From positions 125,230 through 189,229 of the forward strand of contig NIVC01002258.1 of assembly GCA_002269645.1 (NCBI GenBank): a stretch of 64,000 nucleotides of DNA, in the 5' to 3' direction. A program made the translations under genes and the position numbers. This document shows positions 51,002 through 54,000 of this stretch, in pieces. The notes beneath the pieces are model-generated. The model was not told the DNA's origin, made no database searches, and worked only from the letters and a program-made list of their open reading frames with translations. Every line of letters starts with the position of its first letter. Within the stretch, counting starts at the first letter, position 1. Origin of the DNA: Macrostomum lignano (Eukaryota).

Positions 51002-54000
51002 ATGGTATCAGAAGTTTCAGCGCAGCGCTGTGCTGACCTAGAATATGAGTGCAATTCAACTGGCAATGCATTTACAAGCTTAATTAGCGAATTAAAGCTT
51101 GGCATTCCTGTTTATGAAGATCTGATTAACAAGGCTCAAAAGTTAAATGGTGCTTTCAGGTGAGTAGACAAAGAGGGAAATCTGGTTGGTTGGTAGCAAA
51201 GGTGATCTTGTATATTAAGAAGGGGAATCTACTATATTGGAAGGGGAGTCAGGAATATAGGCAGAAAATCTTGGTTATGTAGAATTATGGATCTGGTAGA
51301 TTTAGAAGTAAGAGAATTTGAAAAGTTTGATGGGTAAAGAAATTGGTAGATAGGGAAGGGGAATCCAGTAGATAAGGAAGGAGGATGGGTGGATGAGGAA
51401 GGGGAATCGGGTAGATAAGGAAGGGGAATCGGGTAGATAAGAAAAAGGAATCGGGTAGATAAGGAAAAGGAATCGGGTAGATAAGAAAAAGGAATCGGGT
51501 AGATAAGGAAAAGGAATCGGGTAGATAAGAAAAAGGAATCGTCAATCGGGTAGATAAGGAAATGGAATCGGGTAGATAAGGAAAAGGAATCGAGTAGATA
51601 AGGAAAAGGAATCGGGTAGATATGGAAAAGGAATCGAGTAGATAAGGAAAAGGAATCGGGTAGATAAGGAAAAGAAGTCGGGTAGATAAGAAAAAAGAAT
51701 CGGGTAGATAAGGAAGGGGAATTGGGTAGATAAGGAAGGGGAATTGGGTAGATAAGGAAGGGGAATCGGGTAGATAAGGAAGGGGAATTGGGTAGATAAG
51801 GAAGGGGAATCGGGTAGATAAGGAAGGGGAATTGGGTAGATAAGGAAGGGGAATCGGGTAGATAAGGAAGGGGAATCGGGTAGATAAAGAACCGGAATCG
51901 GGTAAGAGAACTACATGTCGCCCATTAAAATTCGCTGCAGAATACTTCTGTTAGCGAGTTCAGCTTTTCTGGATTCTTTCCAAAAGATAGCGGATTTGGC
52001 TTCAAGCTCCAATGGTGAGTTTCGAAAGGCTAATGCCATGTTTTGTTTAAATGCAAGATTCGTCATTACTCCTATTCTATTTTAACTTTCTATACATATA
52101 GGCGCCACCAAAGAGTTGGGCGCCGCTCTGACGCGAATCTGCTTGAAGCAGCGAACTATTGAGAGCCGGGCCAAGTCCTACAGCGGGTGAGTTCAGTGTA
52201 CAGTGCTTTTGTTTGGTATCACTTATGGTTTCTGCATTGATTCCATATGCAGTTTGGGAATCCTCTAAAAACATACAGTGATTGACTGCTGCCACGACAG
52301 TGATAATGAGTCTGTTATCGCCTTTAAATATTGACGGCAATTAGCGCCAAATAGACTTTACCCGCATACTGCCCTGACAAAGAGTAACCTAACTCAAAAT
52401 ATCGGCAACTATAATGAAATGGAGAAATGAAGGCCAACACCAACATATAAGTAAATTATTATTATAGCCAACGCGTTTCGACACAAGCGGTCATCTTCAG
52501 GGCTTGCACTCATGCACTCATATTGCACTCATATGAGTATGAAATATACGAGATTTCGTATTTCGTATGAGATTTCGATCATATATTTCATACTCATATG
52601 TGAGAGATACTCATATGCGAGATCATATGAGTGCAAGCCCTGAAGATGACCGCTTGTGTCGAAACGCGTTGGCTATAATAATAATTTACTTATATGTTGG
52701 TGTTGGCCTTCATTTCTCTATTATTAATTAAACGAGCATCTCTACCAGATAATGAAATGGACTTTTTAAAGTTCTTTTACTGTGTCAGCACCTGAGATTT
52801 GGGGTGCCCTTCTCTCTCTCTCCCTCTTTCTCCCTCTCTCTGCCTCTCTCCCTCTCCTTATCTCCCTCTCTAACTCTTCCCAGTCTCTCCCTCTCCCTCA
52901 CCCTCCCTCTCTCCCTCTCCCCAGTCTCCCCCTCTCCCTCTCTCCCTCCCTCTCTCCAGTCTCCCTCTCTCCTTCCCTCCCTCCCTCCCTCCCTCCCTCC
53001 CTCTCCCAGACTCCCTCTCTCCCTCTCCCCAGTCTCCCTCTCTCCCTCTCCCCAGTCTCCCTCTCTCCCTCTCCCCAGTCTCCCCCTCTCCCCAGTCTCC
53101 CCCTCTCCCTCTCTGCCCCTCTCCCTCTCTCCCTCCCTCCCTCCCTCTCTCCAGTCTCCCTCTCTCCCTCCCTCCCTTTCCCCAGACTCCCTCTCTCCTC
53201 CCCACTCTCCCTCTCTCCTTCTCTCTTTCTCTCCTCTCTTTTTCTCTCTTTCTATTAATTCGCTTCTGTCCTGCGGTGAGCTAGGAAATCAGGAATGATT
53301 GGGATCTGATCCCAAGAATGCTGCCACACGGTTAGGGAAAAGGCACATCCCTGTTTGGTTTATTAATATTTTGCCCAAGGCGAAATATAAAATATGAGCT
53401 GCTCTACTAACTCTGTCAAATCAGGCGTGAACTTGTCCTAAGAATTTGTGATTGCGTAATAGCGAAATATCGTATATTATGTAATACAAAATAATTTATA
53501 GTAAAATTACGAATATGCACACTTAATTATATATCGCGTCTTTGAGATGCCTATATTTCAACCAACAAACACTGTCACTATTGATTGAATAGAGCTGCTT
53601 TAACTAAAATTTCTTTCCGTATTTTGAATTAATTGACTTGTCGTCGTTGTTTAAACTATATGAAAAGATGATTCATGTCTTAAAGAAATCTTTGCATTAG
53701 AGATTTCCCGGGAGAGCAGGCAGAGGGACTGGGGTAGGGTTGGCAATAGCAAAGTTCATGACCGTGTATAGCTATAAAGCAATATTTCTTCCCGCCTTCG
53801 GCCCCGCCTTTTTAAATATGCAAATTCTTATGGCCTGTGTTTTTTGTATCCGCTTTGCAGACACGTGTTGCTAGTTCATCCGGCCCTCCTGGGGCAGTCG
53901 TATTAGTTTGTTTTAAGCAGCCGTTTGCTCATTCAGGACCTGCCTATCTATCTATCTATCTATCTATCTATCTATCTATCTATCTATCTATCTATCTATC

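Follow-up and report, generated by a model that had tools for sequence, protein, structure and literature searches.

The 64,000-nucleotide stretch of Macrostomum lignano DNA analysed here (contig NIVC01002258.1, positions 125,230 to 189,229; referred to at its full length as the window) contains a 325-bp fold-back insertion that carries a hammerhead ribozyme motif once on each strand and lies within an intron of an MTSS1-like gene. The locus raises the question of whether such a double-ribozyme fold-back represents a new kind of mobile element or the product of a known integration process. An initial annotation, made from the sequence alone, had suggested an undescribed palindromic family of retrozymes or miniature inverted-repeat transposable elements (MITEs). 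The answer favoured here is that the insertion is probably the footprint of a single recent retrotransposition event carried out by the machinery of a Penelope-like element (PLE), consisting of a reverse transcriptase (RT) and a GIY-YIG endonuclease. The event is considered recent because both the inverted arms (92/92) and the target-site duplication (TSD; 13/13) are perfect. The insertion and its intron comprise the following features, given in coordinates of the window.

52187-57553, + strand: host intron of the I-BAR/MTSS1-like gene, donor GTGAGT at 52187, acceptor AG at 57552-3
52411-52423, no strand: left copy of the TSD, ATAATGAAATGGA (sequence reading and repeat finding)
52424-52513, - strand: left arm, read as an inverted, 5'-truncated and tailless copy of the 3' module (repeat finding)
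52466-52504, - strand: mirror minimal type-I hammerhead motif, predicted cut after 52470 (descriptor)
52514-52626, no strand: central quasi-palindromic region (repeat finding)
52521-52609, no strand: inner hairpin, arms of 31 nt at 84% complementarity, loop of 27 nt (repeat finding and folding)
52627-52718, + strand: right arm, read as the 3' module, in sense orientation with the host gene (repeat finding)
52636-52674, + strand: minimal type-I hammerhead motif, stem I to stem I', predicted cut after 52670 (sequence reading, descriptor and folding)
52719-52748, + strand: one-sided tail of 30 nt, at the right end only (sequence reading and repeat finding)
52749-52761, no strand: right copy of the TSD, ATAATGAAATGGA (sequence reading and repeat finding)

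Sequence reading and repeat finding confirmed the anatomy described in the initial annotation, namely perfect arms of 92 bp, a second inner inverted repeat, a 30-nt tail on one side and a 13-bp TSD. The TSD is an exact direct repeat of ATAATGAAATGGA, and its length is exactly 13 nt since the bases flanking the two copies differ. The inverted arms extend over 96 nt (52418-52513 and 52627-52722) with 99% complementarity and one mismatch at 52421/52719, and their perfect part covers 92 nt (52422-52513 and 52627-52718). The final two nucleotides (GA) of the left TSD copy also pair with the right arm and thus constitute a junction microhomology. As shown by the orientation of the hammerhead motifs, the arms are arranged head-to-head with their 3' ends pointing outward; the sense strand of the left arm is the - strand, with its 3' end leftward. 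Neither sequence reading nor repeat finding revealed a counterpart of the tail (52719-52748) at the left end. The centre (52514-52626) is composed of short direct repeats and of variant forms of ACTCATATGAGT, a 12-nt palindrome, and the inner inverted repeat (52521-52551 and 52579-52609) includes perfect 19-mers (52530-48 and 52582-600). The unit is present in two copies that are inverted relative to each other, and no direct repeat of it was found in the region or in the window. TSD, tail and inverted arms support a PLE-type target-primed integration, in line with the PLE-type mobilisation that had already been suggested for this insertion.

The combination of these features matches published descriptions of PLE insertions. 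These show strong 5' truncation, often with an adjacent inverted 5'-truncated copy that results in inverted repeats, a tail of 30-40 bp that is often single-ended, hammerhead ribozymes in the pseudo-long terminal repeat (pLTR), and an insertion bias towards microsatellites (PMC8557442). With the known PLE units (Penelope/Poseidon, Neptune, Nematis and Cercyon), the window element has in common the 5' truncation, the inverted truncated copy, the tail at one end and the TSD, as well as a hammerhead that is part of the pLTR, the terminal module, and lies about 50 nt before the 3' end, a microsatellite nearby and the same geometry as in L007 and the related metagenomic loci described below. It differs from them in that it has neither an open reading frame (ORF) for RT/GIY-YIG nor a direct pLTR and retains, in each copy, just some 150-235 nt of 3' module. 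The fold-back layout is therefore a known by-product of PLE integration and not a new kind of mobile element, and no new family is needed because the known PLE mechanism explains the structure.

The + strand motif of the hammerhead has the sequence AGCC-CUGAAGA-U-GAC(CGCUUGU)GUC-GAAA-CGCG-UU/GGCU, with the slash marking the predicted cut. Its stem I of 4 bp is formed by AGCC (52636-39) and GGCU (52671-74), the catalytic boxes are CUGAAGA (52640-46) and GAAA (52661-64), and the GUU preceding the cut ends at 52670. An extra U (52647) lies between A9 and G10.1, and stem II pairs GAC (52648-50) with GUC (52658-60), where G52648-C52660 is the G10.1-C11.1 pair. The palindrome ACGCGU of helix III occupies 52664-69 (6 nt). 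For a systematic search, a descriptor was built on the characters reported for minimal hammerheads of PLEs. It required CUGANGA and GAAA, G10.1-C11.1, UH, a helix III with a palindrome, a stem I of 4 bp or more and a stem II of 3 bp or more, and it allowed an extra nucleotide. Within the window it matches these two sites only, compared with 0/300 dinucleotide-preserving shuffles of the 64 kb, which agrees with the one minimal type-I motif per strand initially reported. Being duplicates, the two sites amount to a single independent event.

The minimal type-I hammerhead of PLE terminal repeats was defined by Cervera and de la Pena with a descriptor of their own, beyond which four traits were reported, namely the G10.1-C11.1 pair, an additional nucleotide that separates A9 from G10.1, a palindromic 15.2-16.2/loop 3 and families with covariation (PMC4209133). 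All of these but the covariation, and also the short helix I, are present in the window motif, which is known from one copy. With the motifs described in 2014, it further shares CUGANGA and GAAA, a helix III whose palindrome can pair only in the dimer and a helix I of 4 bp, within their range of 4-5 bp. At the level of sequence, its fit to the published minimal PLE-type hammerhead is supported. When two arm RNAs are folded together, the predicted structure at minimum free energy is a double hammerhead (-21.5 kcal/mol versus 2 x -6.2 kcal/mol for the monomers), in which helix III forms an intermolecular helix of 8 bp and the strands of helix I are swapped. As a separate observation, A9 and G10.1 form an AUG together with the U inserted between them (52645-52677 region), but this frame stops after 10 codons and is no ORF start.

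Independent loci with this type of hammerhead were collected by scanning metagenomes with the pattern CTGANGATGAC-N7-GTCGAAACGCGT, which has 22 specified bases. The scan yielded seven unrelated contigs (L001-L007), which are probably host DNA. In 5/7 loci the pairing of stem II exceeds the 3 bp imposed by the pattern, with 4-5 bp in related loci. In L007, a GIY-YIG ORF lies on the strand of the motif, which is located about 100 nt downstream of the ORF's stop codon. The ORF region matches residues 566-786 of Poseidon_Ac, the PLE of Anolis carolinensis (PAc), with E = 5e-11 (tblastn), while Pfam gave a weak sub-threshold GIY-YIG match to the ORF and a weak RVT_1 match to a fragment on the opposite strand. 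Judged from its sequence, this arrangement is the layout of a PLE, with an ORF followed by a terminal module that contains the hammerhead. In an alignment of L001, L004, L006 and L007, the common sequence stops about 60-70 nt past the cut site; in the window, the distance from the cut site is 48 nt to the end of the arm and 78 nt to the end of the tail.

A fold-back layout like that of the window is present in 4/7 of these loci (L002, L004, L005 and L006). The fold-back of L002 (824-1057) has arms of 114 nt with 88% complementarity, 6 nt between them and one hammerhead per arm in head-to-head orientation, and is an older version of the fold-back in the window. In L005 (603-808), a composite inverted repeat with 9 nt between the arms was found, whose inverted copy has lost CGAAACGCGT. 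In L004 (3747-3859) and L006 (1203-1327), the 3' end is present as a short inverted copy directly upstream of a copy that starts at the hammerhead, and sequence reading showed that the insertion in L006 is flanked by a 10-bp repeat, ACAAGCTGTA. Dual minimal hammerheads on opposite strands, 100-700 bp apart, have been known since 2014 from another flatworm, Schistosoma mansoni (PMC4209133).

Two further observations concern L002. Its hammerheads differ at helix III (ACGCGU versus ACAUGU), where both variants are palindromic, although the change could equally result from the decay of CpG in each strand. Beside the hammerhead fold-back, at 600-770, there is a separate hairpin with arms of 85 nt, 92% complementarity and a loop of 1 nt, which draws strong but sub-threshold matches to microRNA (miRNA) precursors.

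The position within an MTSS1 intron was confirmed by tblastn exons and splice sites. The N-terminus of human MTSS1 matches a colinear series of + strand exons at 51032-51160, ~51924-52006, 52102-52186, 57554-58022 and 60818-60865. The insertion begins 224 nt into the 5.4-kb intron, and its + strand hammerhead is in sense orientation with the gene. In the databases, the large exon has a single homologue, an IMD-domain protein from Macrostomum lignano with 50% identity, which places the host among Macrostomum-like flatworms; a vertebrate origin was rejected. A 33-kb locus of M. lignano (L008) has exons in common with the gene at 70-79% nucleotide identity, while the introns do not align. The same intron is rich in microsatellites (52800-53260, 53900-54600 and 55200-56100), with a CT-rich tract that starts about 50 nt past the element and is followed by TCTA-like and GTCT-like arrays. 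These microsatellites agree with the insertion bias reported for PLEs.

A plausible course of events can be outlined by analogy with in vitro work on the Anolis element. In purified form, the PLE protein of Anolis cuts and extends each of the two target strands and begins reverse transcription at two internal sites, with the interval between them corresponding to the tail (PMC11167929). From this scheme we infer priming on both strands for the window insertion as well. A PLE RT/endonuclease would have made staggered cuts 13 bp apart in the intron, and each of the two DNA strands would have primed cDNA synthesis on the 3' region of an RNA from the putative source element, either a PLE with a hammerhead or a non-coding element dependent on PLEs. 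The right-hand copy would have been started at the distal initiation site, resulting in the 30-nt tail, and the left-hand copy at the proximal site, leaving it tailless. Joining the two 5'-incomplete copies head-to-head would then produce the 325-bp fold-back with a hammerhead motif once per strand and the 13-bp duplication. The hammerhead itself would belong to the terminal module of the source element and is presumed to act there, in dimeric form, in the processing of multimeric transcripts.

The window element and PAc share the AUG formed by A9, the extra U and G10.1, and both show two alternative 3' ends past the hammerhead that are separated by an interval of tail length; for PAc, priming on both target strands has been shown in vitro. 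In contrast, the AUG starts an ORF of 846 codons in PAc and a frame of 10 codons in the window, helix II of PAc is longer, and there is no sequence similarity beyond the catalytic core.

Several results weigh against an origin by PLE-driven retrotransposition. Helix II of the window motif comprises just 3 bp (4 bp if a bulged U is allowed), compared with 6-8 bp in the described metazoan minimal PLE hammerheads. Furthermore, the identity of the two halves is confined to their outer 92 nt, and several indels and substitutions separate the inner ~110 nt. Two cDNAs of one RNA would not be expected to differ in the centre, unless the inner hairpin belongs to one copy or the centre of the palindrome was rearranged later. 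Three options may explain this mismatch: the inner hairpin could be native to the longer copy, for example with a right copy spanning 52514-52748 and a left copy of only 90 nt; two variant RNAs could have served as templates; or the ACTCATATGAGT-like repeats in the palindrome centre could have been rearranged after insertion. Self-BLAST against the 64-kb window recovered no arm sequence beyond those within the element. With Poseidon_Ac as the tblastn query, no RT or GIY-YIG coding sequence was detected in the window or in L008, and the linked autonomous PLE considered by the initial annotation was thus not found in the window. No Macrostomum entry occurs in the best 120 of 4581 PLE matches to the RT-endonuclease part of Poseidon_Ac; these 120 are from reptiles, insects or lamprey. 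A PLE partner in this genome is therefore assumed. A literature search for Macrostomum in combination with Penelope or hammerhead found nothing relevant.

The Rfam hammerhead models also gave no match at E <= 10, neither on 2.2 kb nor on the 101-nt arm, and the hairpin drew only spurious miRNA-precursor matches. This search had been proposed in the initial annotation as a check of the ribozymes, and the absence of a match is uninformative here because the models (release 15) equally miss all seven control loci L001-L007 at E <= 10, including the PLE-linked L007. The minimal PLE hammerhead class is invisible to these models, and consequently such insertions go unannotated.

An unlikely alternative to retrotransposition of two separately primed copies is a dedicated palindromic non-autonomous family, in which a fold-back master with a ribozyme on each strand gives rise to a hairpin transcript that is mobilised in trans by a PLE. 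It would suit the quasi-symmetry of the whole 295-nt core around 52565-52570, which reaches beyond the arms, and the nearly symmetric fold-backs of L002 and L005, with 6 and 9 nt between their arms, give a hint of a recurrent symmetric product. In addition, the right half (52514-52748) alone is predicted to fold into a rod-like hairpin plus hammerhead (-72.5 kcal/mol), as retrozyme-like RNAs do. However, an RNA with a perfect 92-bp stem would be a poor template for reverse transcription and its ribozyme would be masked, and the single-sided tail is what is expected from two separately primed copies. Symmetry is also no rule, because L004 and L006 hold unequal inverted copies of a similar module. 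The window contains no second copy of the element, and the known PLE mechanism accounts for the structure. That the fold-back is itself the transposing unit of a macrostomid palindromic, PLE-dependent non-coding family with one self-masked ribozyme per strand is regarded as quite doubtful; if it were true, the hairpin transcripts of this family might feed small-RNA silencing of PLEs. Symmetric two-hammerhead fold-backs such as those of the window, L002 and L005 may nevertheless form a regular class of PLE integration products, as yet unquantified.

Metazoan non-LTR retrozymes are likewise small, non-coding, AT-rich and hammerhead-bearing with a TSD of >4 bp, and they are thought to be mobilised by PLEs (PMC7229834; 10.64898/2026.07.22.740005). 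They differ in that their units, all bearing a type-I hammerhead, are repeated head-to-tail in tandem, making dimeric cleavage and the formation of circular RNA possible, whereas the inverted units in the window permit no tandem dimer within one transcript. The retrozymes of Xenopus are reported to be excluded from introns (PMC7229834). A retrozyme identity was rejected for the window element, which has two inverted copies and no head-to-tail tandem. An undescribed palindromic retrozyme or MITE family is thus not supported, in view of the published PLE signature, the dual motifs in Schistosoma, the fold-backs in 4/7 loci, the lack of a tandem, the 13-bp TSD and the tail.

MITE and Foldback elements also possess long inverted arms and a TSD, and a DNA transposon of this kind with 92-bp terminal inverted repeats (TIRs) and a fortuitous hammerhead-like motif would be consistent with the long perfect TIRs, the flanking duplication, the missing coding capacity and the short subrepeats towards the centre. 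Yet cut-and-paste superfamilies usually generate TSDs of 2-11 bp, a range exceeded by the 13 bp found here, and the right TIR is parted from the TSD by the unpaired 30-nt tail, an asymmetry that does not fit such elements. The descriptor result of 0/300 shuffles and the linkage of this motif type to a PLE endonuclease ORF in L007 also speak against a chance motif, which makes this origin highly improbable. A TSD of 13 bp is, on the other hand, typical of target-primed reverse transcription by LINEs (long interspersed nuclear elements); L1 twin priming also yields pairs of inverted 5'-truncated cDNAs inside one TSD. The insertion could thus be similar to a short interspersed nuclear element (SINE), mobilised by a LINE of this genome with a twin-priming inversion, and have inherited its hammerhead from an older PLE-derived sequence. 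The TSD length and an apparently intact LINE with apurinic endonuclease (APE), RT and RNase H domains at 10920-15867 of the same window would fit this scenario, but the element has no poly(A) or simple-repeat 3' end, and self-BLAST revealed no significant similarity to the LINE 3' end or to the rest of the window. A tail of 30 nt on one side and a hammerhead located close to the 3' end are characteristic of PLEs. Mobilisation by a LINE is considered very unlikely. Finally, perfect palindromes can originate from chimeras in long-read libraries. The structure could then be an error of sequencing or assembly, for instance a chimeric read with a palindrome, or a local inverted duplication that arose spontaneously and independently of transposition. 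Artefacts of this type would not be expected to show an imperfect centre, a tail on one side and an exact 13-bp duplication, and 325 bp is far smaller than read-level chimeras, leaving an extremely small probability for an explanation of this type.

With retrotransposition by PLE machinery as the preferred reading, the hammerhead in the window copy is probably a passenger. It is predicted by folding to be catalytically silent because the sense motif is locked in a perfect 92-bp duplex and has no tandem partner for helix III. The 325-nt RNA is predicted to form a single long hairpin (-211 kcal/mol, z = -29), which supports the earlier suggestion that the ribozyme is masked by its antisense arm in either transcript. 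Tandem PLE minimal hammerheads also cleave poorly in vitro (PMC4209133), and hammerhead mutations had no effect on insertion by the Anolis element (PMC11167929). The copy was probably dead on arrival since it cannot yield a normal template, and its only activity is likely to be the intronic hairpin RNA. The host pre-mRNA would gain a near-perfect hairpin of ~300 nt near the 5' splice site of the intron. This hairpin could serve as a substrate of Dicer or ADAR; a role in small-RNA production or editing is speculation.

What appeared to be an exotic double-ribozyme fold-back would accordingly be a clean and very young case of a known PLE integration signature, in which TSD, tail and junctions are intact. 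It suggests recent activity of PLE-type hammerhead modules in a macrostomid flatworm. Together with the metagenomic loci, the window element provides compact cases that fit the model of both-strand priming with two start sites derived from the Anolis in vitro work.

Other features of the window are independent of the insertion. The LINE mentioned above is part of an apparently intact non-LTR retrotransposon at 10842-15867 (- strand) with an ORF1 of 404 aa (14653-15867) and an ORF2 of 1200 aa (10920-14522), in which Exo_endo_phos, RVT_1 and RNase_H domains were found. Its 3' untranslated region (10842-10897) is 91% identical to positions 5114-5169 of the M. lignano locus L008. A second, degraded LINE-type RT with overlapping antisense ORFs is located at 45458-47624 (RVT_1 fragment at 46842-47120). 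The region 18866-28991 is a 10-kb satellite array of ~457 copies of the 22-bp unit CATCCAGTAATAATTGAAATCC with 90% matches, which creates long spurious ORFs on the - strand. An ankyrin-repeat ORF at 29140-29649 (+ strand; Ank_2, E = 5e-23) is probably an exon of another gene and is followed by a simple repeat coding for His/Ser/Pro on the opposite strand. Upstream in the window, a Pro/Gln-rich ORF of 928 aa (4258-7044, + strand) is followed downstream by an ORF of 212 aa (7856-8494, + strand). Neither has a Pfam match, and both may be large exons of a gene upstream of the MTSS1-like gene.

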